From positions 7,062,576 through 7,126,575 of the forward strand of contig CATNEN010000024.1 of the NCBI GenBank assembly GCA_950097015.1: a DNA stretch of 64,000 nt, in the 5' to 3' direction. This document shows, in pieces, positions 10,339 through 51,062 of the stretch. The notes under the pieces were generated by a model, which searched no databases, had not been told where the DNA came from, and saw only the letters and a list, made by a program, of their open reading frames with translations. The translations under genes and the position numbers were made by a program. The DNA comes from Macrostomum hystrix. Lineage: Eukaryota; Animalia; Platyhelminthes. The first letter of the stretch is position 1. Each line of letters opens with the position of its first letter.

Positions 10339-10411
<73 letters not shown>

Positions 10412-20000: not shown

Positions 20001-22799
20001 CTATTTTCTTAAAAAACCGGAAACCTGTACATGATCTTGCAGTCGGCGAGCATTGTTCTGCGCCCCGGATTCAGCGTGATAGTTGCCAATGAATGAGCCC
20101 TCCTCACCATACTCACCTGAAAGTTAGTAAACCAAGGAAGCAACTAAGTACTTTTAGACATTCTTGACGGGTTTCAGACATTCGAGGAACTCACGATAGT
20201 CGATCACATCCACGGCGCACTGAGCAGAACTCTCGCTAGAGAGGCCGCTGACCGGAGAGAGCCTGTGTCCAGGCTGGTCAGGCTCCCAGACTCCGTCCAG
20301 CCTGTCGGGCTGCCGATATTCGCTGAACACCTCGGCGCGCGCCTCCGCCTGCGGATCATAGCCCCACCGGAGCTCTTGTTTGGCCACCTGGTAGGTTCGC
20401 CCAACCTGCCTGGTTGCCACGCGGATGCCGACTGCCAAGCCTGCCAGCAGCAGCAGCGTGAGGACGACCGCAGCGACGACCTGCGCGCTTGCGCCTGCCA
20501 GATTCTGCTGTGAAGCTGCCTCCGGTGGCTGCCGAATGGACACCGTAAGGTTCTTCAGCTGGCCTGTGATGTCGAAATCGGTCGAATAGAAACAGCGGGT
20601 ATCCCGGAGACAGTCCTGAGCCAGCATCCGACTGCCAGACAGCGACTGTGGCTTCTGAATCTGCAGGCTGCCCATAGCGGCTAAGGATCTGTACCGCAGG
20701 TTGAACACGGGGGTAAGACTGCGACCTTGAGTCAGCTGCGATCTGCAGGATGGCTGTATCCAGAGGACCACGCGGCCTCGATCGTTGTCAGTCTCCAGTG
20801 CGCAGCTGACGTTATCTCGGAACAGAGCCGAGCTAGGCAGCAGTGTTCTGGAGTCCAGTCTGAGGGAGACTAGGATTTCGACGCCGATCTTAGTCAGGAA
20901 GTTGGAGAACTGATCACTCAGACGGAATTCAAATCTCGTGCCGTTGCTTAAGTCGCATCGCTTGGAGTTGCAGTCGCTGTCGTCTTTGACTACAAAGTCT
21001 TCCATCGTAGGCCTCGGAATGAATACAATTTCACTTCCCTGACTTCCGACAGAGTAATCAGATGCACCGAGCAGCTGCGACTCTGTTGAATTAACTGAAG
21101 CCGTACATTCAAAGCGGTGACTAAAGTTTGTTCCAAGCACGGGATGCGAAGGTGGAACTCGGGTTATATTAATTGACAAGCTTCTCGAATAACTGACGGC
21201 TAATGTGGTCAGGTGCATCCAGTTGTCTATGGCGGAAGCCTGCTGACGAAATTCCTTATCAGACAATGCGACCCAGTTGGATTTATCCCCACTAGCGAGT
21301 AGCATGTAAAACACCGGTGTGATAGTTACGGAATTCAGTCCTGAGAATGTCACTGTACAGTTATAAGCCATAGATTCGCCTTCTATGGCGTACACTCTGT
21401 GAGGCAGCAGACCTGAAGTGGCAGATTCCAAGACGGAAGCCTGTGGAAAGCGGGGCATCGAGATTACTGCGACTTCAAACTCGAAAAACTTTGACCCGGC
21501 CTCGCATCTGTAGATGCCATTGTGCACATCAGACACAGATGACGTGAATTCGATCATGTTACCAGTTCTGAATATTCGCAAATCATCCACAAGACTCCAC
21601 TCGTCCAGATGAGCTGGGATAAGCGGCTTTCCGTCGCGATAAAATCGATAGACCTCGCTTTTATCGCTGCAAATGATTGGGCACACAAGGGCGGTGTTGT
21701 CCATGCCCGACATCACAGTCACCTTTCTCTGAAGATTTGGCACGACCTCGCATTCGCGAGATGCCGCAGTGCCATTGCAGCCCCGGTAAAAAACTTCTTC
21801 TAGGGGAATACGCACCCTGACCGGACCCGTGCTCACGTAGGGCTCAGAGTCGCCCGTCACCGATGCGATGGTGCAGATGCCGATGGAAAACTGAGGCATG
21901 CATTCTTCATAGAACAGCTTCACTTCCCTGCTGAGACCGCAGCTTGAGAACCACAGCTTGCCGTCTCTCAGATTTAGGTGCAACAGTTTGGCGCGGTTTC
22001 TGTGCATTGAGTCCATCTTTGAATGGTAATTAACAAAGAGAATCGAATTGCTGAGCTGATAAGTAATGCACGACGAAGAATCAAAGTACAGAATCATTCC
22101 CAGGTTAAGCTTCGCTTTCAGAAACTCCGGCGCTGACTCAATAGCTGCAACAATCTCATGTCTTAAAAAGTCGACTCTAGCAAAGCTATCATCATACGAG
22201 TAGCGAGTAATATTAGTGGCGAAGCTAACAGCACTGTCAGTGAGAAATCCTGGCGTGAAGCTGCGCCCAGAAGCAGACGATGACACCGCCGTCACCGGGT
22301 CCAGGTTCCAGATCCGCAGAGGCTTGGACTCCAGCCGGCCAGTGGAAAACTTCACTCTAACTAGCAGCTCCAGGCTCTCAGTGATGGCGTCCTTCTGTGA
22401 CAGTTCTGACTGGCCGATGTGCAGGCTGAAATCCTCAGCTTCCTTTAAGCTCGATGAGATTATGAATGGCAGGCTGCCTGCACAGCGCACCGCCGTCTCA
22501 GAAGCCGCAGTGCCAACCGAGCCCAGATCCACAACACCCGCTAATGCTGACTTCGGACACCGGAAGCTGAGCAGCCTTCTTAGACCGAGGCCTGTGTCTC
22601 CGGCAATGCGAAGCCTCAGTCCAATCTTCGTGCCCTTCCTGAGCACAGCGATCGCGCCCGAGTCACCGACCTCCCAGACTTCGTCCCAATTTAGGAGTAG
22701 CTTGGCAGACCCACTGCAGTTGAAGTACGGAGCCTGAGACCAGTTCACCGCCAGATGGACCGTGCTCAGCAGCAGCATGAGCAGAAACTGGTAGTGCAT
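20001..22799 (-). CDS. Paralogue A: type I membrane protein, two Ig domains, L1/neuroglian-like cytoplasmic tail with FIGNY motif; predicted join(20195-22799, 20001-20116), 906 aa
   Basis: Signal peptide; Ig motifs LVCPIIC..YRFYR..HNGIYRCEAG and EGESMAYNCTV..FECTASV; TM VVAAVVLTLLLLAGLAVGI. Donor TATC|gtgagt at 20195/20194 and acceptor ctaactttcag| at 20117/20116 (78-bp intron) give VIDYREYGEEGSFIGNY in frame. A further donor CAG|gtttcc near 20024 may add another exon. Confidence 0.85.
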
Positions 22800-24001
22800 G
22801 GTGCAGGTCTGACAATCGATCCATAACGATAATGGGAGGAATTAGCTTTCTAATAAAATATAATTTAGTCAAATTAGTCTAAAATTAAAAAAAATTTAAG
22901 GAACGGAAATATCACCACTAATAATTTTTGTAGTAGCATTAATTATATAAAGTGGTTTTGACTAAGGCCTTGACAACGATCAATAATTAATCTAAATGAT
23001 TTCTGTAAAGTTTTCCAGCAATCAAGTCAACACAAGGACAAAATGACTCACATTTATTTTCTTCTAGAAGGCTTCGTCTTGATATTAAGAACAAATGTGA
23101 TTATAAAAAAGAAAAAATAAAAAAGAAATAAAGAGACTATAAAAATTTCCCACTGCCGACTTTGCTGTGGAAACTACGTTTATTGAGAAGAGTTTTAAAT
23201 AGTTAAACTTTTTAGCCGCTAAGATTAAAACAAAAATAGGTGATCAGCCTTCAACTCTGAACCTGCAATTCTTTAAACTTGTTCTTAAATAAAAAAAAAT
23301 ATTTTTTCGTCTTCTAAAATTATAATCGTGATTTTGAGTTAAATTTGATTAAAAAAATAACTACCTACAATCCTATATCACACTGCGTTGAATAAAGTAT
23401 ACGCGTAATAAAGAGTTATGCATAATTCCCCGATGCTAAATTTCATATGTGATTAGTAGAATATTTAAATTGTGCTTCTATTTTTATGTGAACGAATATA
23501 ATTTCATAACGTTATGCAACTTCATCTGTCCTCATTTGTATCAGTTTTGGTAAACAAGATTGGTAAACTAGATTTATTTTCAATTCTGACCGTAAAATCA
23601 TATACGTATTCGTATTCTTAATTTGATAATCGCACACAAGACTTCATATTTCTTCAGCAATCTTCACTTGTTATAGATCCTTTAAATAAAGCGACTTTTA
23701 AGCGGTTCGTGCTCTGGTATCTTTTTGCTAAACAGAGTTGCAACAACTGCAGCGGAAGGCACAAGAATTTATAACATTACACTATAGTAGGAATAATTGT
23801 CTCCCTATCAGGGGTTTAAAATCGGAACAACGCGATACAAAAGAATCCTTATCTTTATTTCGATCGAAGGGAGAACCTGATAAAATATGTGCATTTATTA
23901 TAAACAAACGAACAGCATGTGGCAAGGGGACTTAATTAGAAATATGCGTTTGCTGAGCACAGTTAAAATATCCATACAAGCTCATAACAGGTTAAGCCGC
24001 A

Positions 24002-24316
24002 ATGCTCATGACAATTGATCTACTACTTCTGGTCGCTCAGCTGGCACCGCAACTCGGGGCAACAGCAGCAGCCTGTCCGAACAGAGATTACATCCCGGTG
24101 TGCGGCGCAGACGGCTTAACGCATCCGAGTCGTTGCTGGGCGGAGTCGGCCGGCGTACCGGTGGTCAGCGAGGGCGTCTGTCCGGGCTCGGAGCGTCGCT
24201 GCACGCGCCAGCTGGCCCCGGTGTGCGGTGCCAACGGCTTTGTCTATCCGAACGTGTGCATTGCAGAGGCAGACCAGGTGCGAGTGCTGCGAGACGGATT
24301 TTGCGACGAATTTTAA
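24002..24316 (+). CDS. Secreted two-domain Kazal-type protease inhibitor (4 Cys per domain), 104 aa
   Basis: Hydrophobic leader, then CPNRDYIPVCGADGLTHPSRC...GVC and CTRQLAPVCGANGFVYPNVC...GFC; intronless GC-rich ORF in AT-rich flanks. Confidence 0.88.
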   Translation: MLMTIDLLLLVAQLAPQLGATAAACPNRDYIPVCGADGLTHPSRCWAESAGVPVVSEGVCPGSERRCTRQLAPVCGANGFVYPNVCIAEADQVRVLRDGFCDEF

Positions 24317-26391
24317 TCATTTACAAATAACAAACCCTAAGCGTTATTTGTTTGCATTGCATGAGAAAGACAATATAAATGAGCGAATTGTTTTGCCAAA
24401 TAATCTACGAGATATTTGAGTATAGTAGATATTATCGAGACTTTTACGTAGTGTTTCAAATTGTATTGTTTAAATTGATGGATTTTGATTGTCAAGTTTT
24501 CAATTCCATTCGAATAGTGTGGAAGCAGCGGTTTCGCGTTTAACTCGCAATTTAGTCCCTGAGCTCGATTCCGCGGCATTAATTTGGAGCGCTGCCGCGG
24601 AGCGAAGGTTTAGTGGCTTGTCGTGCAATTTACGAGTACGCCCTCAACAGTTGGACTATGTGAGAGATACAATTCAGACTACTGTCAACAGTAGAAAAGC
24701 AAAGACTTGGCTGCAAAATTCTCACATAACACAAAAAATATCGCCATAAAAATGGCAAGGCTAAAAGAGACTTCTGTGCACACTAAGAGTGGTGGCTATG
24801 GCTGACTGAAGGCAAACAAGCCAGAAACCGGTCTCGGTCTGCCAGCGCGAGGTTCGTTCCCCACTTTTAGTGTGCTACAGACTACCAAGCCCTTTTGCCG
24901 CCCGTTTTTATACCAAGGGGGGTTTTGACAGCGCCTGAATGCTAACAGCGTTGGGTGGTGACTGATTGGTTGACAGACTAGGCGATGGTATCCTGTGGTT
25001 GAGCTTCGCCTATTAGGCTTGATCCGTGAAATAGGAGAAGTTTGTGTCAGGTTGTGTATGGTGGCCTAGTTACACCTGTTGTTGCTCTGTAAGGTTCAGC
25101 AGTTCGTCTATATAAAGGTGGGTGACCACCGAAGAAGGAGATAATGCAGGCACATTTGGGTGACATTCTGATGAATTTTGAAGGCCTGGCAAGGCCGCAC
25201 TGAGGTGCAGTGCTAATTCGTGTATACTAGCGCTTATGGGAAAAATCTGACCTTTGGCCCTAACCATTAAATATCTCGACGTTCTGAAGAGCTGGCGACT
25301 TGATTATTGTTTAAGAAGATGCGCAATTAAAAGTTGGCCCGTGTTCTTGAGTTTCGTGTGATTGCGTTGCCCCATTCGGGTGCAGCAGAAAAATTGTCTT
25401 TGTGCTCTTGTGTTAAGGGCCAACCTCCTGGGCACAGTGAGAGTGTACACTGCCTGACGATGAGAAAATCAGGACAGATGTACACACCTGTGTGAGTGTG
25501 TGCCTGCTTACAGTATCTGTGTGCGAGTGTGCTCAGTAGTCAGTGAATGGGCAGAGCTGCCTGATCCAAATGATTCGCGAGTGCCCTCAACCCGTCTGCC
25601 AATATTATTATTATAATAGCCCAGATCGGGCCAACTGTAAGTGGCACAGCCGCAGCTATTGCAAGGAACTATGTACACTACGAAACAATGTGTGTATGTA
25701 CTTGAGCAACACTTTTAATTACCAATTGATTCAGTTCACTCAGCTGCGAAATTGGTACTAGCATCAGCTGGGGTAGAAATTAAAGCTATAGTGTCATGGC
25801 GTCCTCCCAGTCCAAAAGGGGGCAGAGCTTCAGAAATATTAGAAATAGTTTTTAGTTTTGACAAGAACTTTATATGCAGCCTCTAAAAATGACATTATTC
25901 ATCTATACTCCATGACTCGACTGGTTGTTTTGCAAAGTGAAAGCGGCTGGAATATTTTTACACATTCGTGGACACATTTTTTGACAAGATGAACGTTGCA
26001 AATGCTACACCAAGTTATTAGGAGTCTACAGTAAAACAAAATTTGACGCTTCGATTTCATTCCTAGACGAGGCATACTTCGCAATCTGGTCTGTAGGCTT
26101 TGGCTGCGGCATAGTAACCTTGTTGTGTGAGCTAAAACCTGTTCACAATCGCATCTGAAGATATTTATCAGGCTATTTAAACTGCGATGCCAACTTTAAG
26201 ACGCATTTTCTGCGACTTTTTTCTATGAACTCAGAGGCAGTCTTATCGAAGAAGATTTTCTAAACTAGCTTACTTACTATATTGCTTGCTTGCGGACTTA
26301 TGTTCGCATAGCAGTTATTATAACTGTTTTATGCAGTTAGTTATCCGGGCGTGCAGTGGATTTCCAAATTTGGAGTGATACATAGAATATA

Positions 26392-28010
26392 TAGCATTTT
26401 GCGAGCTATTGCAGACTACGAGCAAGCAATTTAATCCCAGAGAGCAAAAACACACGCATTTCGAGCCTCGATGCTAACTGTCTATGGTAAAAAGTGTATC
26501 AAACCGGCAGGCAATTTAATCCATCGAGCACTCATTTAGGCACTGAAGCCCACAAACAGCGCTGTCTATGATGTTCCTCTCTCCGTTTTTCATCATGTCA
26601 GACGAAAGTGACCAAGCCAGCACCATTTTTGAAGACATCGACGGAATCGCTGCCGAAGATGACGGAGCGCCACCTGTGCAATATGCAAAGATTAGCGACG
26701 AAAAGCATAAATTGATAATCGACGCAATCGACAGAGGCGATAACAACAGAAGCATTGCGCGCTGGCTAAATGTAAAGGCCAAGACCGTTGCTAGCATTCG
26801 AAGACGGTACGAAATTACTGGCCGCAGTGAACGGCTGCGACGTGGCGGTGACCATTCGTCGAAGATGGCATTGGAACATGTCCAGGCGCTGCTGATAGCA
26901 CTGGACCAGAATTCTCTCTTGACTTTGAAAGAGATGCAGCGTATTTTACTGGATCAGTTTCCTGGAGTGCAAGTGAGTGAAGCAACCGTGAGTCATTCTC
27001 TGGACAAGCAGCTGATTACGTCAAAGTGCCTCGGTCGCGATCCTGATGTCCCGGAAACAATAAAAAATCCAGCCAACATAGCGCGCAGGCAAGAATTCGC
27101 ACAGTGGTTGACAGGCCTACCGATGGATTGCCGGCTGGTGTATGTGGACGAAACGGGATTCAACATTTGGACCTGTCGGTCATTTGGACGGAGCAGACGA
27201 GGTCAGCGAGTTCGCCGAGTTCTACACACACAGCGAGGTGTGCAAGTAAATGTAATTCAAGCTACTTCTTTTGACATGGGCCTGGTCAATCATAAAAACC
27301 ACAGCAATGGAATCATCTATGGGCAGTGGTACATCGTGATGGACGGACCCCGGTTCCACAATGCGGCCAGAATTCCGGCCCAGTTCGCGACAAACTGGCA
27401 CATCGTGGTTTTGCCTCCCTATTCACTATTCTTGAATCCTGTAGAATGCGCGCATTCATGCCTGAAGGCAGCCATCAAGAGGGAGTTGGCCCGACCAGCT
27501 GTGCAACTGGAACTGGACACTCCGCCTCCGGAAACTACGCTACGTGACTGGCGTGTCCTGGTGCTGTAGAGACTTTCCGAGGAAGCGACGGCAGAGATCA
27601 CACTTGTGAAGTGCGGCGGCTGGTTCAGGCAGATGCTGCACTATGTTCCGCGCTGCATCGCTGGGGAGGTGATTATGTAACTTTCTGAAGTCTGAACTTA
27701 TCTAAAAACCTTTCTGTGTGTTTCTTTCTATGCTGCAAGGTTTCGTTAAGTGAATTTGTTAACTTCTACTGTATCTTGTTCTTATTTTATCACATGGAGC
27801 TTCCAGGTTGATTCGGTTGGAGGCATGCATCAAATAAATTGAAATACTGAGCGCGATAGTGCTTAAATGAGTGCTCGATGGATTAAATTGCCTGCCGGTT
27901 TGATACACTTTTTACCATAGACAGTTAGCATCGAGGCTCGAAATGCGTGTGTTTTTGCTCTCTGGGATTAAATTGCTTGCTCGTAGTCTGCAATAGCTCG
28001 CAAAATGCTA
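26392..28010 (+). mobile_element. Tc1/mariner-IS630 DNA transposon with ~153-bp TIRs and TA TSD
   Basis: TIRs at 26392-26544 and 27858-28010 (one mismatch seen); TA at 26390-26391 and 28011-28012. Confidence 0.93.
26568..27569 (+). CDS. Tc1/IS630-type DDE transposase, probably defective
   Basis: HTH region, YVDETGF, VMDGPRFH, LPPYSLFLNPVE. TAG at 27567-27569 is followed by 36 more in-frame codons to TAA, and the first-to-second Asp spacing looks short. Confidence 0.85.
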   Translation: MMFLSPFFIMSDESDQASTIFEDIDGIAAEDDGAPPVQYAKISDEKHKLIIDAIDRGDNNRSIARWLNVKAKTVASIRRRYEITGRSERLRRGGDHSSKMALEHVQALLIALDQNSLLTLKEMQRILLDQFPGVQVSEATVSHSLDKQLITSKCLGRDPDVPETIKNPANIARRQEFAQWLTGLPMDCRLVYVDETGFNIWTCRSFGRSRRGQRVRRVLHTQRGVQVNVIQATSFDMGLVNHKNHSNGIIYGQWYIVMDGPRFHNAARIPAQFATNWHIVVLPPYSLFLNPVECAHSCLKAAIKRELARPAVQLELDTPPPETTLRDWRVLVL

Positions 28011-29380
28011 TAGTAGAGTAAGTAGACCTCATCTTCACTTAGCGCCATTGTCTCATATTGAAGGGATATTATGGTTGCACGCCTTGAAAATCTAAGCCCA
28101 TGAATTACTTTATCTGTCTTGCCAAGCTGACCATAATTTGGGCCATAGACATGTGGAGCGTGCACCAATGAAGCGTATTGTGACACGCTTCAACTGTCTA
28201 TGGGTAAGAGGTCCCCAAGGTCATTCAATCCCAGTGGAGAATGGCTATGATTGCACCAATGTATTTGACAGAGAGCGCGCACTCTTTGGCATTCTCTACA
28301 ATATCGTTTTAATCATGATCGCTTTCATAACTTGCGCAAATGGTCTTGTCCATAGACTACAGCCGCGCCCTAGGCGCCCTCTACAAAATATCATTGGCTG
28401 ACTTGTCTATGGTTCAGATAGAATATAATCTATGGTGGCCATCGATTTCAGACAGCCAAAGCGCCTGACACTGAATCGCGCCATCGGACCTCTTTTTGCT
28501 TTGGGGTTGCTCAGCTTTTTCTTGTTGTTGTTTCTGTGTTGCCGTAGCATTGCAAATCACTACAAAAGGCCATGCACCCAGAAGTTTACCATTCGACTAC
28601 CGACCACCAATTGACGTTGGTCAGAGCCTTCTCAGATTATGAGATTAGTGAGTTTTGAAAATAAATTTGTCTATGGCCCCTTTTCCTCGTCATCAGGACG
28701 ATGGCTACTTACACCGGAAATCGTAAAAGAAAACATTCTCAAAGAACCATTCTCAATCCAAAGCTTCGTTCGTTACGCTCATTACATGTATTTTAGATTG
28801 CAAAGAAATCGAATTGTAGAATTAAATTTTATAAATTTTCTATAATTTCCTCGGCGTATATCTAGATGCATTTTATAAGGCATTGCAGCATAAAATTGTA
28901 ACTAAGCAGACTATGCAAGAATCCAGAAAATTGACAAAAAAGATTTAAGCATTTTAGGAACAGGTACAATAAGTGTGACAATGTGAGGATTGATTTAGGC
29001 TAAATATTAGGCGATTAAAAATTAAATAAATTTTGCTACTAAAATATAACATTTTTTTCGCAGCCAGAAAACTTTCATGCGAAAAAGTTTGGCATTTATT
29101 GTACTCATGAATAGTAGGAGCAGGGCACAACAAAACGTTTCGCTAATCTAAAAAATATTTCAAAGACTGTTAGCCGTCTAAGCTTGATCGATTCTCGTCT
29201 TGGTTATATAACATTATAAATTAATTGACTGCAGGCGTTGTCAGTGAATCCGACTCGAGAATTTTAATCAGGTACATTTCATAGATGTACGGTGCACCGA
29301 TGCCAATAAGGTCCTTACGACAGTTCAGAATAGTCCTTACTGCTGACGGAAACAATCGAGACATTCAGCACCTGCTTGTT

Positions 29381-31930
29381 TCATGCAACAACTAGCGCTG
29401 GGGCGTCCTCGACATCGGCTGCGCCAGCCCTGATGTAATCCTTGAAGGCCTCCTCCCTGGCCTCGGCTCTGGGGTTATGACCAACGCGGAGCTCATTCTC
29501 CTCAACTAGGTAGGCGCGCTCCAGAGACCTAGTCATTATGTACACAGCTACCAAGGCTACCAGTACAGCGACCGCTGCTGCGATGGCGACACCAGCGATT
29601 GTCCCCATGGCTAAGCCAGTTTCCTTCGAGGGCAGTGGCACAACCAGGAAGTTCAGTCCCACCCTGAGGAAGTCGAGACCGCTGGCCAAATCAAACTCAG
29701 TCGAGTAGAAGCAAAACGGGTCAGACCGGCAGTCCATAGTGCCAGCGGCAATGCTTGGAATACCGTAAGCTGACTTATTGTGCTGGAGATTACTCATCAC
29801 TTTGCTGTTCGGGTAACTCAGCTTGAACACGGCTGTCAGATTCTTCCGTTTCTGCAGCTCGTCTAGCACACTCTGGCTCGATATTGGCCGTATTAGATAA
29901 GATAAAGTTGCGCTCTTTGTATCGAAATGGAACATGGACGCATAATCAACAAACAGAGGCTTGACGTCGGTAAGAAGTAGGTCATCCAGCATAAAGTAGG
30001 CAGAAATCTCGACGCCCAAATCCCTCAAGTAGGCGGCAGTGTCTTTGGATAGAGAGAATTTAAAGTTGGCGCCATTAATTACGCCACAGTTCTGAACGGA
30101 GCAGTTATTGTTCGGATTGATGACGAAGCTCTCTCGTGTTAAACGCTTTAAAAATATGACGTCGGTGCCAGTTTGAGTTCGATATTCCGACATGCCTACT
30201 AGCGCAGATTCGACCGAATCAACAGACGCATTGCACACAAACCGGTGGCTGAAGTTTGTGTGCAGTGATGGATTCACTGGCGGCACGCGGACCACATTCA
30301 CTGATAAAGTTTTTTGGGGCCCAGCAGTTGTTGTTGTAATACTCATCCACTTGTCGGTAGCTAATAACTTCTGACGAAATTCTTCGCTGGTAAGACCAGC
30401 CCAGTTAGTCCGACTACCACTCGGCAAGTGCATGTAGAACATGGGAGACACTGTCACAGAGCTCAGTCCCCCGAATCTAGCCGTGCAGTTATAGATCAAT
30501 GACTCGCCCTCCATCGCGAACACTTTTTCAGGCAGCAGACCGGAAGCCGCAGAGCCTGAGCTGCTTCCGCTCATGGAAGACGCATTCGTGGTAAATTGCG
30601 GCATTGAAATTACTGTCACATTAAACTGGAACGACTTTGAACCAGCTTCACACCTGTAGGGGCCCGAGTGCTCATCTGATACGGAAGTGGTAAACTCTAT
30701 AATATTGCCAGTTTTGTACACCCGAATACCTTTGATCAGAGTCCATTCTTCGGAAGCGAGCAATAAGTTGTCGCCTCGAAAGAATCGGTACGCCTGGCTC
30801 TTGTCGTCGCAGAGAATGGGACAGACAAGCGCAGTGGTGTCCATGCCTGATATGATAGTCACATTGCCATTGGCATTTCTTGCCACTTCACAGCGTCTCA
30901 AATGCATAGAGTATGCAGGGTATTTAACATGGTTAACCGGAAAACGTTCATCAACAGCCTGAATACTATCATAGGGCTCGGACTTTCCGGAGAGTGACAT
31001 GAGGGTGCAGATGCCTATTGTGCTTTGCGGTTTCGCTTTATTGTAGAGCAAAGCAATTTCGTGCTTCAGTCCGGAGGCAGAAAATTCAAAATAGCCACTT
31101 TCTATGTCTAGATGCATCAGCTTCTGCAGATTCTGAAGGCGGAAGTCAAACTTCGAATAGTAGCTTACAAACAGAATGGCCTCGCCAGGCGGGCTGTACA
31201 GACAGGAGCCGGCATTGAAATACAATTTGGCGCCCATTGTGATTTTGCTTTTAAAAAACCGAGGTGACGATTTAACAATCTGCGAAACCGTAGGCTCAAT
31301 AAAGAGAACCGATGGAAACGGACCGTCTTGTGAATAGTTCAGCTTCGTCATTAGTTCAATAGCAGCCGCGGTGAGAAATTTTCTTTGCAAGGCGCCTATC
31401 GAACCAGCATTGAATAAACTCAAGGGATCTAGGTTGTACAGAAAAAGAGGATTTGACTGAATCGAGCCGCCAGCCCATTCAACGCGCACCCTCAGCTTCA
31501 CATTCCTATTGGCCACTTCGTCGTATTGAATAGACGAAACGCCCATTTTTAGCTCGAATTTGCCCTCGACTGTGACACTCGACTGTACGGTAAACGGAAT
31601 AGAACCTGGGCACCGAACCACGGACGAACCAGTGAGCTGTGTGCTCAAATCAACCTCTTCAGACCGTCCGTCAAGCGGGCACTCGTACATTAGAATCGTT
31701 TTCAGATGGCTACCGACGACACCGCTTACTGACACATTGATATAGATGATCTTGTCCTTGGTCAGTATAGAAAGCACGCTGGACGATCCGGCTTCCCAGG
31801 TGTCGCTCCAGAACAGAAGCACCTTGTGGTTAGGAGAGAAGTCGAAGCGAGGCATCCGCTGGGCCGCGACGCCGATGATGCAGCCGCTGCCAAGGCCGAT
31901 TAGCAGAGCCAATAGCACAGAGGACCTCAT
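29381..31930 (-). CDS. Paralogue B: single-exon type I membrane Ig protein, 849 aa, short L1-like tail
   Basis: Intact ORF colinear with A: MPRF..W.AG, NLDP, SGMDTTALVCPILC, HSGPYRCEAG, CFYSTEFD, TM, then RAYLVEENELRVGHNPRAEAREEAFKDY. Confidence 0.9.
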   Translation of the reverse strand: MRSSVLLALLIGLGSGCIIGVAAQRMPRFDFSPNHKVLLFWSDTWEAGSSSVLSILTKDKIIYINVSVSGVVGSHLKTILMYECPLDGRSEEVDLSTQLTGSSVVRCPGSIPFTVQSSVTVEGKFELKMGVSSIQYDEVANRNVKLRVRVEWAGGSIQSNPLFLYNLDPLSLFNAGSIGALQRKFLTAAAIELMTKLNYSQDGPFPSVLFIEPTVSQIVKSSPRFFKSKITMGAKLYFNAGSCLYSPPGEAILFVSYYSKFDFRLQNLQKLMHLDIESGYFEFSASGLKHEIALLYNKAKPQSTIGICTLMSLSGKSEPYDSIQAVDERFPVNHVKYPAYSMHLRRCEVARNANGNVTIISGMDTTALVCPILCDDKSQAYRFFRGDNLLLASEEWTLIKGIRVYKTGNIIEFTTSVSDEHSGPYRCEAGSKSFQFNVTVISMPQFTTNASSMSGSSSGSAASGLLPEKVFAMEGESLIYNCTARFGGLSSVTVSPMFYMHLPSGSRTNWAGLTSEEFRQKLLATDKWMSITTTTAGPQKTLSVNVVRVPPVNPSLHTNFSHRFVCNASVDSVESALVGMSEYRTQTGTDVIFLKRLTRESFVINPNNNCSVQNCGVINGANFKFSLSKDTAAYLRDLGVEISAYFMLDDLLLTDVKPLFVDYASMFHFDTKSATLSYLIRPISSQSVLDELQKRKNLTAVFKLSYPNSKVMSNLQHNKSAYGIPSIAAGTMDCRSDPFCFYSTEFDLASGLDFLRVGLNFLVVPLPSKETGLAMGTIAGVAIAAAVAVLVALVAVYIMTRSLERAYLVEENELRVGHNPRAEAREEAFKDYIRAGAADVEDAPALVVA

Positions 31931-35700: not shown

Positions 35701-38481
35701 CACTTTAAGATGTGCGCCGCCTTGCACCACAGAAATGCACGTTTTCGGACCTTGAAGGTTGCCATTTCCAACAGGAAGTATTACCCCCAGGAGAGTATTA
35801 CCCGAAAGGGATTTCTAGCGAATCAACAGCCGGCGTTACGCGGGTGTCTGGGGTGTCCCCCGGATTGGTTTGGCGGGGGTCCTGACGGTGTCCCGGCGGA
35901 TTGGTAGCCATAGGGTCCGGCGGGTGGAGTAGTGGGTTCGAAGCCCCGAGGAGAGGATCACTCGAATAGGGTTTTTATCGTGACGAAACATTATTTGAAC
36001 AAATATATTCAAGAGAGAGCCTTAGGCTCTACATATTGTACGATTATCTCAGCTTGGCTGTATTATCAGTTTTATTCGTTGTGTCCAATCGGCGCTCGCT
36101 GATTGGGTGTAAGCACCCACCCCAGGCCCCACCCCACCGCCTTGAGCTGCGTTGTGTTTTTCAGCCGGTGCCCGTGTACTGCCCAGCCTTGTCGCTTCGC
36201 GCTGCGTAATTTGAAAACTTTTCTTTTTCGTTGCTTCCTTTTTCTTGCTTTAGCCTTTTTGTGTGCATTTTGAATTCTTTCTTCGAAACGTTTTATGTGC
36301 AAATATATTGTATGTGGGCCATAGACGGTGCCCTCCCCTCGTTCGCTTTCTGCTGTGTCGCAACTGTTGTCTGCCTTCGTGCCTGGGAGTGTGGCGTTTA
36401 CATTCCACAAATGAAGACTTAACATTCAACTGGCTTTTCTCCCTTCGAACCCCCTCCGAAGGTCTAACAACGGATTTCGGATTTTGCGACGGATTTCCAA
36501 TATTTTAGTTAGGCATAAGAAAACTGGTATTCAGGGATGCAAGTGTCATGCTGTAATTTGTATTCTTGAATGAACGATGGAAAAATTATTAGATACTATA
36601 TGCTGCGAAAACTGTTTTCAGAGGCCAAAAACAATCGAAAAACTGGTCAGCTCGACTATGCGTCTGCCCCCTTTGCTTATCTGCACAATGGCGCCTTTCA
36701 TTCTGAGCGTGGACGACATCCTACTAACAGTAGTAGCGCTCGCATATATAGAACTTATTTCCAATCGAACCACGTCATGGTGATTTGTGCAGTACAGCCA
36801 AAAGAGGGACAAGGAAGTCCTCGTTCCAAACCAGCACTCACTGGCAATAGTGGTGCACAGCCTGATTGACTGTTTACACGCTTGATTGCTTTGATTGTAT
36901 TGGGAAATTTAAGATCCAAACATTTTGTTTTGTTAGCGCTCATTTGCTGAAATACCTCTATAATTCAGTTTTGCTGTAGCAAAACGTCGTTCTTCAACCC
37001 TCGATTGTAAAATAGTTATCTCTGAATCTCAGAAAATAAGACTCGAAATTTGAAAGGAAGAAAGCAGGATATTTATCTGATCTTTAGCTCCATTGAAAGT
37101 GACTACATTTTTAAAGTAAATTTATTCAAAAATATCTTGTCTATCAGCATGACTTGTTTACACATTGGATATTTACCATTGATATGAAACATGCTTTTAG
37201 ATAGTGAACAGCGATCATATAAACAAGGACCAAGCAGATTTCGTCAAGCTACATTCTTATGAGACAGCGACAATAAACGCATCTGCAGGTATTTTCCTTG
37301 AACCAAGAAATTCCTGGGAATTCAATATACCATTTTACATTTTCTTTTTAAATTCGAGCGCAAATTGGAAGACACTTGCCAATTATATTCAACCAACGCT
37401 TCTACTTTTGTCTATGGTAAAAGCAACGTTTAGGCCCCGACAGAGCCATAGAATTTAAGACGTTGAACAATGAACAAAAGCATGGGGCCAAAGACTGTCA
37501 CTTTTTGTATTAAATGCCTCAGAGTTTAAAATCTGATTGCAATTGCTTGAGTCATTACTTCTCCACGTTCATGGCTTAGACCGTTGACAATAGTCGAAGG
37601 ATTAATTGAATATTGTTGGCCGTGTCCAAAATGTAAGGCTTCGTGTCCTGAATAGCAGTTTCTTATAAAATTAGTAATTGCAACGAATAACAACGTATAA
37701 GCATTGATAGTTCGATCCAAACACAATTTTTTTTCAGTATTGATGCATATCGACCTTGAATATTTATCGGAAGACAACCTCATCGAAAGAATACGTAAAA
37801 CAGAGCTTCTGATCACGACCGCGGAGGTTGTGTTACTATATATCGCGAAACTTTACCAGAGTATCAGAAAGTATTTGAAAACACGACATAAAAATATAAT
37901 GCTTGAGCAATAAAGTTGAGTCTAAAAAAATTAAGAGCAAGGAAAATCGGCTACCAATAGTAGGTGATGTTTTTTCAGCATAAAAAAGCTGATTCACACG
38001 CAACCGCAATATAAAGTGATATCTCCGAGATTAATATTTTGGTTTTCTAAAGTATCGTAGAAATCATGAACCCAGCATTAGGAACTTAGGACACATGCAG
38101 CTGAATAAAAACATTGAACGTCATCTACTTTAAATTGCCATTCATTGGAAGCCATACGGAACGGTGAAACTTTTTATGTCACACACTTTTGTTGACATGC
38201 GAATCACTACTCAGTGCAATGTACGTCCACAGTCGGAAGGTTTCTGTAAGCAAAATTGCAGTACTAAAAACGTGAATCTTTTCTTATACTGCTTCGACTT
38301 CGAAAGAAACTAAACTTTTCGATGAAAAGCACCAGCACCACAAGCAAAGATATTGATTGTTAAGGATACTAAGGCCTTAAAAAGTCCCCCAGTCAGACCA
38401 ATTTAGCAAAAATTGAGATGTACTAAAGTCTCATCGAACTAGAAGCTTATCAAAGTTATCAGAGTTATCAAAGGCTGTGGG

Positions 38482-41037
38482 CTACATTGCAATGTCCCGT
38501 TCACCGACCGGCTCAGCGTATGAGGCCCGCTCCGACTGGCGAACGTACTCCTTGAACTCCTCCTCCATGGCTTCGGCATTCGGATTGTGCCCCTGCTCGA
38601 GCTCCTTCTCCTCCAGGTGGTACGTCTTTGCCGGAGGTCTGTTCGCGAAATATACCACAAGAACCAGTAGCAAAATTATTACTAAAACACAAACGACAAT
38701 CACAACTATCATCATTTTCATGCTGGCGTCGGACAAAGGTGATTCGGGGCTTTTGAAGTCTAGGTTGACAGAAAGGAAGCTCAGACTGCCAGATGTGTCA
38801 AAGTCGGTCGAATAAAAGCACATTGGGTCAGCACGACAGTCCTTTGAACCCAGAGCGACGACCGGAGCTCCATATCGACTCTTCAACATGTTGACGTTGC
38901 CCATGTCAGCTGCATTCTTGTAACGGAAGTTGAACACGGGCGTCAGGCTGCTTCGCTTCTGCAGCTCAGTGCGCACATCTTCTCGAGTGATGGGAAGTAT
39001 TTGGTACGTGATGCTCGTGCCGTTCGACCTGATCACAGAAACAGTTTCGTTCATCAGAATCCTGACGTCAGTGAGCAGGAAGTTGTCAATACGAAGAAAC
39101 AGGTCCACATCGACCCCGATGTAAGATAGGTGTGCAGAGAACTCCGGGCTCAAAGCAAACTGGAATGACGCGCCGTTACCAAGGTTGCACTTTTGAGTCA
39201 CACAGTCATTGCTCGGATTCAGCACAAAGCTGTCCTTCGTTGGACGAGGGACGAACACGACGTCACCACCAGTCTGGGCAGCATAGCTAGACATGCCCAG
39301 CTCCTTGGCATCAGCACTGGGCACACTGGCGTTGCACAAGAATCTGTGAGTAAAGTTCGTGCCGAACGAAGCCTGTTGCGGAGGAACGCTTTCGATTGAA
39401 ACATTCATCAGCTGAAATCCTGATCCCGCTGCTGGATAGCTGATGCCGACGGCTGAGCTTCCACTACGGCTAACACGCAAGTTGAAGGCCGCTAGATTCT
39501 GCTCGGCCCAATTCACGACACCGCCGGAGACGGATGGTAAATAGAATTTCGGATCCAACGACACTGAAGATCTCAGTCCGGAGAAACTCACGCCACAACT
39601 GTAGGACAAGCTCTCACCTTGCATGGCAAATACCTTCGGAGGCAATGTGCCACTATGGCCTCCGATAGTGGTCGCGAATGTCGGCATGGACACGACAGAT
39701 ACGTAGAATGTAAAGCTGACACTTGCAGCCATTTCAGCTGTGCACCTGTACTCACCAGCCTGAATTGACGAGACATCTTTTGAAAACTCGATGATGTTTG
39801 ATGTTTTTGAGATCCGGACACCTTGTGTTCCGAAATCACTCCAGTCGAATGATCTAGATGGTATGAGTAGCTGACCGTTGCGATAAAAAGTAAACACTGT
39901 TGTCGGGTCATCGCAAATGATTGGGCATACCAACTGGGAACTGTCCATTCCAGAGTAGATGGTAACATTTTCTTGAGTTCCACGCACCAACGTGCATGTT
40001 GAGCTCAGACGTTTATCGGGACACGTTGTGTAGGAAAAGTCTGTGCTCGGAATTATACTTCGAACCTCGCTGATCTTTGAGTAGGGCACCACTTCGCCAG
40101 AAAAGGACACGGATAAACATATTGCAATTCGAGAAGGGTTGTTCCACTGACTGTAGGATTGAGCAACCGACTTGTACAACTGGCACCTTGCATACCAAAG
40201 AATGCCAGTGGTTCTATCAAGAAACATTGTCTTCATTCTCTCCATTCCAAAACCCGGAATTTTAGAATCATATGTCGTAAAAAGGAAGCTTCTGTCGTTC
40301 TGGACACTAGAGCAGCCACTCGGGTCAAAGAACAAAATGGCTCCCATATTGAGCTTGTGTCTGAAGAAACTTGGCGCTGATTGCAGAGCACTCACGAGTC
40401 GGTTGTCCAGAAATGTAAAATTGTGAAAGTCACCTGTTCCGAGATTCATCCGAGTCATCAGCTGGATAGACGGCTCAGTGAGAAAATGACGCTGATATCC
40501 TGCTGGTGTTGACGAATCTTGGTGAAAATCGCTGATTGGATCCAAGTTCCAAATAGACAGAGTGTTTGACATGAGAACTCCGCCACCGGCATACTCTACC
40601 CTGGCTGTAATAATCACCTTGGATGAAAACACTTCAGAGAATGGCACTGAAGAAGTCCCCATTCTAAGCTCGAATTCGTCAGTGCTGTTTACGTACCGTA
40701 GTTTCAATGAAAATTTAATATTTTTTAACGTGTAGTCTGTTGTAGAATTGTTCAGTGAGTCTAGCTTAACTGGTTCGTAAGAATGGCTTTGACAATTTAG
40801 GAGCAGAGTGCGTTTGAGTTCGGATCGATTGGCCACACCATCGACTTGCACTTTAAGGAAGATTTTTTCATCTTTTTCATATTTTTTCAGTAGACCAGTC
40901 GAAGTTTGTGTCCCCGCTTCCCAGACATCACCCCAGTTCAGAAGCAGCTTCGATGTCTGAGAATAAACGAACCGAGGCATTTTTCCGGCTGATGCCGTAC
41001 AAGACAGTATCAAAATTAGTACAAAAGCCAGCTCCAT
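38482..41037 (-). CDS. Paralogue C: single-exon type I membrane Ig protein, 851 aa, short L1-like tail
   Basis: Intact ORF colinear with A and B: SGMDSSQLVCPIIC, QAGEYRC, QGESLSYSC, CFYSTDFD, TM MMIVVIVVCVLVIILLLVLVVYF, tail KTYHLEEKELEQGHNPNAEAMEEEFKEY. Confidence 0.9.
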   Translation of the reverse strand: MELAFVLILILSCTASAGKMPRFVYSQTSKLLLNWGDVWEAGTQTSTGLLKKYEKDEKIFLKVQVDGVANRSELKRTLLLNCQSHSYEPVKLDSLNNSTTDYTLKNIKFSLKLRYVNSTDEFELRMGTSSVPFSEVFSSKVIITARVEYAGGGVLMSNTLSIWNLDPISDFHQDSSTPAGYQRHFLTEPSIQLMTRMNLGTGDFHNFTFLDNRLVSALQSAPSFFRHKLNMGAILFFDPSGCSSVQNDRSFLFTTYDSKIPGFGMERMKTMFLDRTTGILWYARCQLYKSVAQSYSQWNNPSRIAICLSVSFSGEVVPYSKISEVRSIIPSTDFSYTTCPDKRLSSTCTLVRGTQENVTIYSGMDSSQLVCPIICDDPTTVFTFYRNGQLLIPSRSFDWSDFGTQGVRISKTSNIIEFSKDVSSIQAGEYRCTAEMAASVSFTFYVSVVSMPTFATTIGGHSGTLPPKVFAMQGESLSYSCGVSFSGLRSSVSLDPKFYLPSVSGGVVNWAEQNLAAFNLRVSRSGSSAVGISYPAAGSGFQLMNVSIESVPPQQASFGTNFTHRFLCNASVPSADAKELGMSSYAAQTGGDVVFVPRPTKDSFVLNPSNDCVTQKCNLGNGASFQFALSPEFSAHLSYIGVDVDLFLRIDNFLLTDVRILMNETVSVIRSNGTSITYQILPITREDVRTELQKRSSLTPVFNFRYKNAADMGNVNMLKSRYGAPVVALGSKDCRADPMCFYSTDFDTSGSLSFLSVNLDFKSPESPLSDASMKMMIVVIVVCVLVIILLLVLVVYFANRPPAKTYHLEEKELEQGHNPNAEAMEEEFKEYVRQSERASYAEPVGERDIAM

Positions 41038-44670: not shown

Positions 44671-44671
44671 T

Positions 44672-46224: not shown

Positions 46225-47420
46225 GATGCCTGACCAGCAGCTGTCGATCGATGAGACTCTGCTTATGTACAAAGGACGGGTACAGTTAAGCCCAGTACAT
46301 CCCATCCAAGAAGAGCAAGTACGGAATCAAGCTGTATCGCCTATGTGAGGCCAAGTCTGGATTACCTATGGAACTTTGCCGTCCACACGACGCAGGCAGG
46401 AAAATACCAGATTCGTTGCTGGACTACCGCTCATAGACTGCGGAGCACTGTCTTTCAGCGAGCGAGTCGTCGCCGAGCTGTGCCGTGACGTTTTGCACCT
46501 CGGCCAACACATCTTCACCGACAGCTGGTTTACGTCGCATCGACTAGCTCTGTGACTGCTGGCCCGTGACACCATGCTCACCGGCACCGTGCGCTAAGAT
46601 CGTGGATCGGCACCACTGCTGCGAGGCTCTAACCTGCGCTCTACATCATCAGCATTCTCTAGGTGCGGCAGTGTGCTAGCGTGCAAGTTTGTTGACTCCA
46701 AGAGCAGCGCCAAAAGACTGTACCTACTTGACACGGCTGGCACTGCACAATGTCACGATGTTCGCCCTGATGGTCAGCTGCAAGTCAGCATCACCATGTA
46801 GTCGTTACATGGGTGGGTTGGACCACATGGACTCTAGCATGAGTCCCTACATGGTGGAAGTCATTGCGCTGGTTTAACAAGCTGGTCTTCCATATGATTT
46901 GTTATACTAGTCCGCAACGCTTAAATCGTGTACAACTTTCACGGTGGCAGCATGAACTTCCTGCACTTCCTCCGCAAGGCACTGGACATTCCGGTTGCGG
47001 AGACCGGCGTTGCCAAACGCTGAGGTAGCCCTCTGGCTGCAGCAGCGGGGCCAACTGGCTCAGGTAACGGGCCTCCTGCTGCTGGTGGCGGTCCCAGACA
47101 TTCGCCCAGCAAGGCGCACATGGAAGCTAGGACCCCTGATCCGGCCTCGCAAGCGGTGCAGTGTGCAAGAAGCGGACAGTTTTCGTCTGTGCCGCATGTC
47201 CGGGGATGCCAGCCCTGTGCTTAGGCGCGTGCTTCAGGGCCAGGCATTGACGTCTATTCTCTGTTTTTTACTTTGAGAACAGTTTATTATTTTTATGGTG
47301 ACCGTCGGGAACGTCGGTATAAAATCTAACGATGTTGCTCTAGACTTATAATTTGTTTCTGCCATCTCGCCCGGATGGTACCAGAGTGGACAAAAACTGC
47401 CACCCGCCTGGCTTAGGTTA
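46225..47420 (+). mobile_element. Degenerate piggyBac (PGBD4-like) transposase remnant
   Basis: QLSIDETLLMYKGR, QYIPSKKSKYGIKLYRLCEAKSG, HIFTDSWFTS, YMGGLDHMD across frameshifts; candidate right end ...cttagg|ttaa at ~47411-47421. Confidence 0.82.
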
Positions 47421-48466
47421 AGAATGTAATGACGAACCACAAGCTTAATTTCTAGTATGGTAAATGTTTAATTAGAGTTGCCAACAAGAAATATTTTTGA
47501 AAACTTAAATACGGAAAGCTGACAACTTTAATGGTTTCGATTTTTCAGCACACTCGCCTTCGTTTTCTATGAAGAATTAAGAACTGCGATTCTGAAACCC
47601 ATATAAACCGTTATCGTCGCATGAAGTACGAATATTATATTTTACGTATATTGATTTGTTTTCGAAGCACAAAAATAGAAACTGATCATGTAAAGAGTCG
47701 ATTTGAAACTTTACAGACATGTTGAACAACTAAAACATCGAGCAGTAAAACGCATTTTAGTTAAATATTTGCGGTTAGTGAAAATGGTTCAGCAAATCTA
47801 CTATTAATATAATTATTGGAGTTTCATTGCTTAGAAAAACAACACTAAATAGTAAAAAATTGTGCCTTATCAGCTATGCCGGTGAGAAAAAATCAAGGCA
47901 GACAACTAGTAGTTGGTACTAAATTGTGTCAACTGCAATTACAATTGACACTAATATTGCCTCTAGTGTCAATAATCATTAGAGAAAATTAGAAAAAGCT
48001 GTTAATACACACCTTGATAGGCTATGACTGATTAGCTAGGGTACATATAGCTAAATCAACTAAAAAATCATCATGCCAGATCCTCGTACTGTGGCGTGGT
48101 CCAGAAACTTATTGACAGGGAAATATAGATATAAAACAGACAAAGTCCTGCAAAATGACAATAGTCACTTAGCGAGAAACACTTAAGAGAAAACAACAAA
48201 TATTGCACACAAAAACACAAATTAAGTGCCAAATTGTCACAAAAGACAATTGAGATTCCCATACTGCATTAAAAAAGTTGCAAAAATGTTTTTTCAGATT
48301 TTAATAACACGCAGATAAATATATTGTTATTGCCCGCATATAAATTATAAGATTCTAACAACAAGAAGGAAGGCTTCTAACAAATAGTGCAACAGCAAAA
48401 AGGTCTCAAATTCAAAGTCTAGTCCTAAAGGCCAGAAAATTCCTGAAAGCCAACTACTTCACTAAA

Positions 48467-51062
48467 CTACTCACCGTACAAGAAGCTGGCCTTTTCAAAG
48501 GCTGTAGGATGCATTGCAATGTCCCGTTCACCGACCGGCTCAGCGTATGAGGCCCGCTCCGACTGGCGAACGTACTCCTTGAACTCCTCCTCCTTGGCTT
48601 CGGCATTCGGATTGTGCCCCTGCTCGAGCTCCTTCTCCTCCAGGTGGTACGTCTTTGCCGGAGGGTCTGTTCGCGAAATATACCACAAGAACCAGTAGCA
48701 AAATTATTACTAAAACACAAACGACAATCACAACTATCATCATTTTCATGCTGGCGTCGGACAAAGGTGATTCGGGGCTTTTGAAGTCTAGGTTGACAGA
48801 AAGGAAGCTCAGACTGCCAGATGTGTCAAAGTCGGTCGAATAAAAGCACATTGGGTCAGCACGACAGTCCTTTGAACCCAGAGCGACGACCGGAGCTCCA
48901 TATCGACTCTTCAACATGTTGACGTTGCCCATGTCAGCTGCATTCTTGTAACGGAAGTTGAACACGGGCGTCAGGCTGCTTCGCTTCTGCAGCTCAGTGC
49001 GCACATCTTCTCGAGTGATGGGAAGTATTTGGTACGTGATGCTCGTGCCGTTCGACCTGATCACAGAAACAGTTTCATTCATCAGAATCCTGACGTCAGT
49101 GAGCAGGAAGTTGTCAATACGAAGAAACAGGTCCACATCGACCCCGATGTAAGATAGGTGTGCAGAGAACTCCGGGCTCAAAGCAAACTTGAATGACGCG
49201 CCGTTACCAAGGTTGCACTTTTGAGTCACACAGTCATTGCTCGGATTCAGCACAAAGCTGTCCTTCGTTGGACGAGGGACGAACACGACGTCACCACCAG
49301 TCTGGGCTGCATAGCTAGACATGCCCAACTCCTTGGCATCAGCACTGGGCACACTGGCGTTGCACAAGAATCTGTGAGTAAAGTTCGTGCCGAACGAAGC
49401 CTGTTGCGGAGGAACGCTTTCGATTGAAACATTCATCAGCTGAAATCCTGATCCCGCTGCTGGATAGCTTATGCCGACGGCTGAGCTTCCACTACGGCTA
49501 ACACGCAAGTTGAAGGCCGCTAGATTCTGCTCGGCCCAATTCACGACACCGCCAGATACGGATGGCAAATAGAATTTCGGATCCAACGACACTGAAGATC
49601 TCAGTCCGGAGAAACTCACGCCACAACTGTAGGACAAGCTCTCACCTTGCATCGCAAATACCTTCGGAGGCAAGGTGCCACTATGGCCTCCGATAGTGGT
49701 CGCGAATGTCGGCATGGACACGACAGATACGTAGAATGTAAAGCTGACACTTGCAGTCATTCCAGCTGTGCACCTGTACTCACCAGCCTGAATTGACGAG
49801 ACATCTTTTGAAAACTCGATGATGTTTGATGTTCTTGAGATCCGGACACCTTGTGTTCCGAAATCACTCCAGTCGGATGATCTAGGTGGTATGAGTAGCT
49901 GACCGTTGCGATAAAAAGTAAACACTGTTGTCGGGTCATCGCAAATGATTGGGCATACCAACTGGGAACTGTCCATTCCAGAGTAGATGGTAACATTTTC
50001 TTGAGTTCCACGCACCAACGTGCACGTTGAGCTCAGTGGATCGGGGACACGTTGTGTAGGAAAAGTCTGTGCTCGGAATTCTACTTCGAACCTCGCTGAT
50101 CTTTGAGTAGGGCACCACTTCGCCAGAAAAGGACACGGATAAACATATTGCAACATGAGAAGGGTTGACCCTCTGACTGTAGAATTGAGCAACTGACTTG
50201 TACAACTGGCACCTTGCATACCAAAGAATGCCAGTGGTTCTATCAAGAAACATTGTCTTCATTCTCTCTATTCCAAACCCGGAATTTTAGAATCATATGT
50301 CGTAAAAAGGAAGCTTCTGTCGTTCTGGTCACTAGAGCAGCCACTCGGGTCAAAGAACAAAATGGCTCCCATATTGAGCTTGTGTCTGAAGAAACTTGGT
50401 GCTGATTGCAGAGCACTCACGATTCGGTTGTCCAGAAATGTAAAATTGTGAAAGTCACCTGTTCCGAGATTCATCCGAGTCATCAGCTGGATAGACGGCT
50501 CAGTGAGAAAATGACGCTGATATCTGCTGGTGTTGGCGAATCTTGGGGGAAATCGCTGATTGGATCCAGTTCCAAATAGACAGAGTGTTTGACGTGAGTA
50601 CTCCGCCACCGGCATACTCCACCCTGGCTGTAATAATCACCTTGGATGAAAACACACCAGAGAATGGCACTGAAGAAGTCCCCATTCTAAGCTCGAATTC
50701 GTCAGTACTTGTCGACAACGATTTTAAACTAAATCGAATATCATTTGGGATTGTGCAAAAGATCGGTGGAGGTGCTAGTTGTCAAGGAGGCCAGATCAAC
50801 AGAATCTACAGTTGCTTTAGTGGGACAACTGACAAGCAGTGTTCGCTTAAGACCAGAGCCCTCCAGGCACGCCATCAACTCGCACCCTAAGAGTGAGTTT
50901 GCTATCTTTGCTGAGGAGTGCCATGGAGTTTTGCGATCCTGCCTCCCAGACATCACTCCAGACAAGTAGCAACTTTGATGCTTCAGAATACACAAACCGA
51001 GGCATTCGTTCACAATAGACTGACCAAGTCTGGAGACAAATTAACAGCAATAACAGTTTCAT
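48467..51062 (-). pseudogene. Paralogue D: frameshifted copy closely related to C (pseudogene or consensus indel errors)
   Basis: ATG at 51062 with signal peptide MKLLLLLICLQTWSVYC. About 7 frameshifts (~50860, 50760, 50567, 50523, 50276, 50038, 48663). The tail continues ...DIAMHPTAFEKASFLY then G|gtgagt. Confidence 0.82.

Follow-up and report, generated by a model that had tools for sequence, protein, structure and literature searches.

Probable compact L1-type adhesion genes, expanded in Macrostomum: a tandem array in Macrostomum hystrix

Introduction

What kind of membrane protein is encoded by a gene array in which an L1-type cytoplasmic tail follows an ectodomain that sequence comparisons hardly recognize? 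The array in question lies in a stretch of 64,000 nucleotides (nt) of the Macrostomum hystrix genome (assembly GCA_950097015.1, contig CATNEN010000024.1, positions 7,062,576 to 7,126,575 of the forward strand), referred to here as the window, and consists of four minus-strand paralogues, A, B, C and D, with ATGs at 22799, 31930, 41037 and 51062. The original prediction, made from the sequence alone, was that an L1 signalling tail had been fused to a different, intronless ectodomain and that the chimera had then been amplified, giving a candidate family for adhesion or self/non-self recognition.

The canonical design of the L1 cell adhesion molecules (CAMs), consisting of six immunoglobulin (Ig) and several fibronectin type III (FnIII) domains, is held as invariant from nematodes to humans. 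The analysis presented here indicates that the array is a divergent member of the known L1 system and not a new kind of receptor; it probably represents a group of compact L1-type Ig adhesion molecules, devoid of FnIII domains and expanded in Macrostomum, whose members would differ in their link to ankyrin. What is new at the locus is the conserved order of three genes, the RNA-confirmed FIGNY exon of gene A, the horseshoe predicted for the ectodomain, and the fact that B and C have lost the ankyrin motif.

Organization of the array and splicing of gene A

The locus contains three intact genes, arranged on the minus strand in the order C, B, A, and one pseudogene. Their parts are as follows:

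20154-22799, minus strand: gene A, uninterrupted open reading frame (ORF) of 881 amino acids (aa)
20195..22799, minus strand: gene A exon 1 (ORF, AlphaFold2 model, fold matches, RNA contigs covering 20189-22708)
20117..20194, minus strand: gene A intron, 78 nt (sequence and RNA contig)
20001..20116, minus strand: gene A exon 2, coding part, with stop TAG at 20001-20003 (sequence and RNA contig)
29381..31930, minus strand: gene B, uninterrupted ORF of 849 aa, architecture as in A
38482..41037, minus strand: gene C, uninterrupted ORF of 851 aa, architecture as in A
48467..51062, minus strand: copy D, pseudogene, frameshifted relative of C

All four predicted copies are therefore present at their ATGs, although D is not intact. 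Exon 1 of A codes for the signal peptide, five predicted Ig-like domains, the transmembrane (TM) helix and the proximal L1-type tail; the A, B and C proteins, which are 35–40% identical in pairwise comparisons over their whole length, each display the N-terminal hydrophobic leader, the single TM helix and the short tail that had been expected of every copy.

Gene A is expressed and spliced to yield a 906-aa product, because a 442-nt RNA contig (X1) connects 20116 to 20195 with exactly 78 nt absent and because the RNA contigs, obtained from four runs, stay within the gene, being confined to 19657-22708 with none on either side within 18401-24000. The CT..AC borders of the missing segment on the plus strand correspond to GT..AG on the gene strand, and the intron has a GTGAGT donor, a TACTAAC branch-like site, a CAG acceptor and in-frame stops; the last 14 codons of the 881-aa ORF are intronic read-through, exon 1 ending at 20195 after ..IDY-C. 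Exon 2 reads in frame ..R-EYGEEGSFIGNYHAES.. up to the TAG and contains EEGSFIGNY, a FIGQY-type ankyrin-binding motif, while the transcript extends as 3′ untranslated region to at least 19932. The premise that each copy is intronless thus fails for A. The RNA runs used for A also hold 0.90–0.92 of the sampled words from B, which is likewise expressed.

Could exon 2 of A be a constant exon shared by the whole array, in the manner of the variable/constant arrays of the protocadherins and UGT1? This possibility was rejected: 78 nt separate exon 2 from the donor of A itself, to which it is joined in RNA, the only good post-tail donor of B (TC/GTAAGG, the slash marking the splice point) lies after the B stop and is in a different phase from that of A (C/GTGAGT), and C and D have their own remnant of the motif. 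Among the contigs, which are few and of low depth so that the negative is a weak one, no loose ends were found at the acceptor of exon 2, and therefore nothing points to B or C splicing into it. Neither a regular expression nor tblastn with the family tails found further FIGQY-type exons in the window.

Homology of the cytoplasmic tail

The motif Y-x-[VL]-x-x-x-E-L-x-x-G-x-[DN]-P-x-A-E-A-x4-F-x-[ED]-Y, which the original prediction had described, is found in the tails of A, B, C and D. Is this tail a true L1-family tail? Judging from sequence comparisons, the tail of the array is indeed homologous to the L1-family (Bravo_FIGEY) tail, because full-length homologues of the array proteins pass the Pfam model and because a direct comparison of profiles surpasses its shuffled controls.

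A word-indexed search returned a single homologous protein and an exhaustive profile search, with an alignment of A, B, C and P0001 as query against ~1.8 billion representatives, was required. The latter yielded six full-length groups of proteins (E 0 to 1e-226), all of them from Macrostomum lignano, and about twenty proteins matched through the TM/tail region only, including some that combine I-set Ig domains with Bravo_FIGEY at 50–87 bits. With respect to the Pfam cut-off of 23.8 bits, the full-length homologues P0003, P0005 and P0006 score 37.4, 56.7 and 60.9 bits, respectively, and the tails of the M. lignano homologues that pass it end in ..GSFIG[GE]Y.

In the second line of evidence all sequences were cut after the TM helix, and the cytoplasmic parts of spliced A, B, C, D, P0001, P0002 and P0004 were compared by hhalign with five canonical tails of such I-set/Bravo_FIGEY proteins. 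The alignment has a probability of 97.3% and E 2.6e-11 over 87 columns that include the GSFIG[QN]Y block; single tails gave E values of 2.2e-9 (A), 6.6e-5 (B) and 1.4e-4 (C). As controls, the reversed template gave P 0.84 and the best of 20 column shuffles P 0.039. Exon 2 of A aligns to FNEDGSFIG[QN]Y of the canonical tails, and the FIGQY-type ankyrin-binding motif near the C-terminus is present in A only, B and C stopping before it. A sequence search of the PDB with a tail returned nothing relevant.

Predicted architecture of the ectodomain

The ectodomain had been described as a ~340-aa region, two Ig domains and a ~170-aa region, none of it of L1 type. AlphaFold2 was run on A with an alignment of 21 family sequences, and in the resulting model (mean predicted local distance difference test, pLDDT, 77; predicted template modelling score, pTM, 0.73) five beta-sandwich domains separate the signal peptide from the TM helix:

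22290-22736, minus strand: predicted Ig1 of A, residues ~22-170
21765-22289, minus strand: predicted Ig2 of A, residues ~171-345
21450-21764, minus strand: predicted Ig3 of A, residues ~346-450
21012-21449, minus strand: predicted Ig4 of A, residues ~451-596
20520-21011, minus strand: predicted Ig5 of A, residues ~597-760
20412-20489, minus strand: predicted TM helix of A, residues 771-796

According to this model the ~340-aa region would correspond to Ig1 and Ig2, both carrying helical insertions, the two Ig domains to Ig3 and Ig4, and the ~170-aa region to Ig5, so that the two regions left without a fold are themselves predicted to be Ig-like. The ectodomain as a whole is predicted to consist of five modified Ig-like domains, the first four arranged in a horseshoe of the L1/contactin type.

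Ig1-4 of the model superpose on Ig1-4 of axonin-1 over 362 of 382 residues with a root mean square deviation of 5.2 Å, CNTN4, CNTN5, Sidekick and DCC fitting similarly, and residues 20-758 align to Ig1-5 of CNTN2 and Sidekick-1. The top Foldseek matches in the PDB (E 1e-17 to 1e-12) are contactin-1/2 Ig1-6, DSCAM, Sidekick, neurofascin-155 Ig1-6, hemolin, CNTN4 and axonin-1; an ESM Atlas shape search returned DSCAM and contactins, and the clusters of the AlphaFold database (AFDB) that follow the family's own members comprise an unnamed protein of 890 aa, matched over the full length at E 3.8e-30, and a "Neuroglian" of 685 aa at E 1.5e-23. When the N-terminal 326 aa of A were modelled alone (pLDDT 86, pTM 0.85), nearly all matches were Ig folds (V/I-set domains and two-Ig tandems), residues 3-150 resembling CAR D1, JAM-A D1 and MPZ at about 3 Å and the Ig1-Ig2 pair resembling Neph1 D1-D2 and hemolin Ig1-2. 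A protein-atlas feature search with the N-terminal region gave low-score beta-sandwich leads only (Methyltransf_FA and galectin; 0.80, i.e., chance level). As to FnIII domains, the array proteins have no fn3 match in Pfam even at E 10, and in the model of A the gap between Ig5 and the TM helix, only about 10–35 residues, leaves no room for one.

These structural predictions bear directly on the idea of domain shuffling, in which an L1-type TM and tail module was joined to the ectodomain of a non-L1 Ig receptor and the chimera then amplified. The check by AlphaFold and Foldseek returned the Ig1-4 horseshoe, and no fusion would be needed, because the first four Ig-like domains are predicted to form a horseshoe typical of L1/contactin-type CAMs. 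It is true that the ectodomain does not match L1 proteins significantly by sequence, trematode L1-tail proteins aligning in the TM/tail part only, that the same horseshoe is common to several non-L1 families (contactin, DSCAM, Sidekick and DCC) and that a protein encoded almost entirely by one exon would suit retroposition or shuffling. Yet the comparisons revealed no donor family, neurofascin and the contactins are among the best structural matches, as is the AFDB cluster named "Neuroglian", homology within the family runs unbroken from the ectodomain through the tail, and loss of domains combined with fast drift explains the data without an additional event. We therefore regard shuffling as unlikely, even if it is the rival that survives best.

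Conservation in Macrostomum lignano

If the array served self/non-self recognition, how should it compare with its counterpart in another species? In M. lignano the orthologue of C is P0001 (70% identity) and that of B is the group P0032/P0034 (60–61%). On contig NIVC01002404.1 (fetched locus L002) the C orthologue ORF occupies 3264-5831 and the B orthologue 9950-12622, while an unannotated A orthologue, 61% identical, lies at 19973-22622. The C-B-A triad is older than the split of the two Macrostomum species, because the order and strand of the three genes in M. lignano match those in the window.

Identity between orthologues ranges from 44 to 74% by domain, mostly 57–74%, without any hypervariable domain, and conservation is highest in the proximal tail (72–83%). 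Paralogues A, B and C diverge most in Ig1, Ig2 and Ig5, with identities of 29–43%.

It is the latter divergence, together with the tandem expansion in a single lineage and the turnover suggested by pseudogene D and by an apparent conversion tract between C and D, that could speak for a fast-evolving recognition family, devoted to allorecognition or to mate or sperm recognition, with the paralogues as a specificity code. One-to-one orthologues conserved in the same order argue against fast-evolving self/non-self genes, divergence is fairly even across domains, and only three intact genes exist at the locus; such a function is accordingly very improbable. What stands of the earlier interpretation is the L1 tail and the amplification, the family being lineage-specific in that its full-length members are, by sequence, found only in Macrostomum; its claims of a fusion with a non-L1 ectodomain, of intronless genes and of self/non-self recognition do not stand. 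On the observational side, the copies and their shared tail motif are confirmed, and a single-exon A, an intact D and regions of unknown fold are not.

Members of the family in M. lignano are listed as uncharacterized proteins (A0A267FAG6 / PAA70766.1, A0A1I8GDY1, PAA56014.1, BOX15_Mlig020816g1), some of which bear the automatic UniProt names "Bravo_FIGEY" or "Neurofascin/L1/NrCAM C-terminal domain-containing protein"; they belong to the same family as the array but come from a different species and their gene models are partial. No paper on the M. lignano/M. hystrix family turned up in the literature searched. The public model P0001 (723 aa) is truncated at the N-terminus and lacks the first ~130 residues of an 855-aa ORF, and within the fetched locus no gene is called for the A orthologue. 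More distant M. lignano relatives (P0007-P0010) have no more than their three to four N-terminal domains in common with the family (E 1e-20 to 1e-43) and lack the L1 tail; some of their models are fusions with unrelated genes (RNA helicase, MPEG1-like).

Tail evolution in B and C and the pseudogene D

The tail of B ends at a TGA (29381-29383) ahead of any FIGQY motif and behind this stop a conserved remnant of the tail is still found in frame (29318-29380). The B lineage is without FIGQY in both species, the M. lignano protein ending in ..KDDLELS-stop, and the B stop in the window comes 22 codons earlier than that of M. lignano B. In C a TAG followed by a 13-nt insertion occurs just ahead of the degenerate motif retained in D and in M. 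lignano (38440-38484), the C lineage having a degenerate SF[ML]Y at the end of the exon in M. lignano and in D. The A orthologue of M. lignano retains a DYR/GTGAG donor. Measured against the M. lignano orthologues or D, the stops of B and C appear premature; each cuts the tail immediately ahead of its distal, ankyrin-binding half, and behind each the homologous sequence can still be read.

Copy D is a decayed duplicate of C, later than the Macrostomum triad. From ~50720 to 48495 it is 94–100% identical to C 40700-38470, and inside this tract it has at least five frameshifting indels: single bases are deleted at about 50569, 50525 and 50278 and two bases at about 50044, and one base is inserted at about 48665. 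The 5′ ~350 nt of D are diverged from C (50–66% identity), and in its tail ORF ..ASFLY can still be read, with a GTGAGT donor behind it.

The tract shared by the two copies (~2.2 kb, 38470-40700 vs 48495-50720) has sharp edges, the 5′ coding ends, the upstream regions and the 3′ flanks being only 50–66% identical; it looks as if an intact gene had undergone gene conversion with a pseudogene from a different paralogue lineage.

That B and C are themselves decaying toward pseudogenes, so that only A would be functional, is suggested by their early stops and by the fate of D but is hardly credible, considering that the 849- and 851-aa ORFs are still open, that B is well represented in the RNA runs, that the absence of FIGQY from the B lineage of M. 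lignano points to a short tail that is old and kept, and that the proximal tail is precisely what orthologues conserve best.

Relation to known adhesion systems and proposed mechanism

How much of the L1 design is left in the array? Like the L1 family CAMs (L1CAM, neurofascin, NrCAM, CHL1, Drosophila neuroglian and C. elegans LAD-1/SAX-7), the array encodes type I proteins with a predicted Ig1-4 horseshoe, a single TM helix and a Bravo_FIGEY tail, in which the membrane-proximal Y-x-V-x-x-K-E and F-x-E-Y blocks are shared and to which A adds GSFIGNY on a separate last exon. Unlike them, it has five and not six Ig-like domains, no FnIII domains and a length of ~850-906 instead of ~1200-1300 aa; its Ig domains have drifted so strongly that Pfam barely detects one, Ig1 and Ig2 have predicted helical insertions, nearly the whole protein is encoded by one exon, and B and C are without FIGQY. 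For residues 20-595 (Ig1-4) and 20-758 (Ig1-5) of A the best structural matches come from contactin/axonin-1, Sidekick, DSCAM, DCC and hemolin, but these have glycosylphosphatidylinositol anchors or unrelated tails, none with Bravo_FIGEY, and the sequence identity is only 9–16%.

A third group comprises trematode L1-tail proteins of ~800-890 aa (Calicophoron daubneyi CAL8068123.1; P0014, P0023, P0029), which have a similar size, a single TM helix and the NFNEEGSFIGGY motif; their TM/tail region aligns to that of the array with an hhalign probability of 99.5% and E 9.3e-23, and the only link between the ectodomains is the structural match to the unnamed 890-aa AFDB entry. A candidate homology of the ectodomain to trematode P0013 (columns 353-837 in a first hhalign) was discarded, since only the TM/tail part survived with larger profiles.

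Several observations weigh against the assignment of the array to the L1 family. Taken alone, the window tails do not reach the Bravo_FIGEY cut-off (14.3 bits for C and 17.3 bits for D, no match for exon 1 and exon 2 of A scanned separately), so that Pfam gives the window copies no direct support, while full-length homologues pass the model at 37–61 bits; because exon 2 alone scored nothing on the Pfam model, the FIGNY of A constitutes independent support. When whole proteins are scanned, Pfam gives only weak Ig_2 matches, no Ig domain other than the third being even weakly matched; the family is without the sixth Ig domain and without any of the FnIII domains by which canonical L1 is defined; the sequence homology between the ectodomains of the array and of the trematode L1-tail proteins is not significant; and the tail stops of B and C are read from the assembly alone.

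Weighing all this, descent from an L1-type ancestor is the simplest reading and probably the right one; it would entail loss of the sixth Ig domain and of the FnIII stalk, strong drift of the Ig sequences and expansion of the family in Macrostomum, each product being presumably a type I membrane glycoprotein with five modified Ig-like domains, one TM helix and an L1/neuroglian-type tail. As to function, which we infer from L1, neuroglian and LAD-1, the horseshoe may mediate trans binding between cells, as in L1, axonin-1 and hemolin. Such binding would cluster the protein, and clustered A could recruit ankyrin and the spectrin skeleton via SFIGNY, by analogy with neuroglian, for which cell-aggregation and ankyrin-recruitment assays exist and whose FIGQY-type motif recruits ankyrin and the spectrin skeleton (PMC2120821); tyrosine phosphorylation would probably switch this recruitment (for LAD-1 and FIGQY phosphorylation, see PMC2196473). 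B and C, on the other hand, may adhere or signal without coupling to ankyrin, because they retain no more of the tail than its conserved membrane-proximal half.

A bolder extension would see in the C-B-A triad a division of labour within one adhesion system, in which each of the three ectodomains binds with a specificity of its own, A alone is connected to ankyrin and spectrin, B and C serve as partners that are uncoupled or compete, and the whole provides flatworm tissues with a small lineage-specific adhesion code derived from a miniaturized L1 devoid of FnIII domains; we consider this rather improbable.

Other features of the window

Outside the adhesion family, the window contains the following elements:

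26568..27569, plus strand: DDE_3 transposase ORF between A and B (Pfam PF13358, E 7.7e-13), 333 aa, with DDE_3 transposase and helix-turn-helix domains, Tc1/mariner-like
59987-61711, minus strand: retroelement pol fragment with reverse transcriptase-RNase H and integrase zinc-binding domains, within a GC-rich island (65–68% GC) at 58000-62000
14715-16633, plus strand: long tandem repeats, a proline-rich 13-aa unit over ~1.9 kb, with strong GC skew
10841-12268, plus strand: extensin/keratin-like low-complexity ORF upstream of the proline-rich repeats
1438-2541, minus strand: ORF coding for the C-terminal part of the catalytic domain of a protein tyrosine phosphatase (PTP; PF00102, E 9.7e-15); it probably represents a single exon of a PTP gene

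Implications

What would such an array tell us about the L1 family? If the proposed reading is correct, it shows which parts of L1 are dispensable, as the horseshoe and the ankyrin-binding tail were kept, the membrane-proximal stalk was dropped and the motif was lost in some of the copies. B and C would represent natural "tail-truncation" variants, with which the separation of adhesion from cytoskeletal coupling could be tested. Furthermore, for the purposes of annotation, stretches of ~340 and 170 aa labelled as unknown in dozens of Macrostomum genes would become readable as Ig-like domains. The interest is moderate and of a specialist kind, as the array would add a divergent member to a known system.

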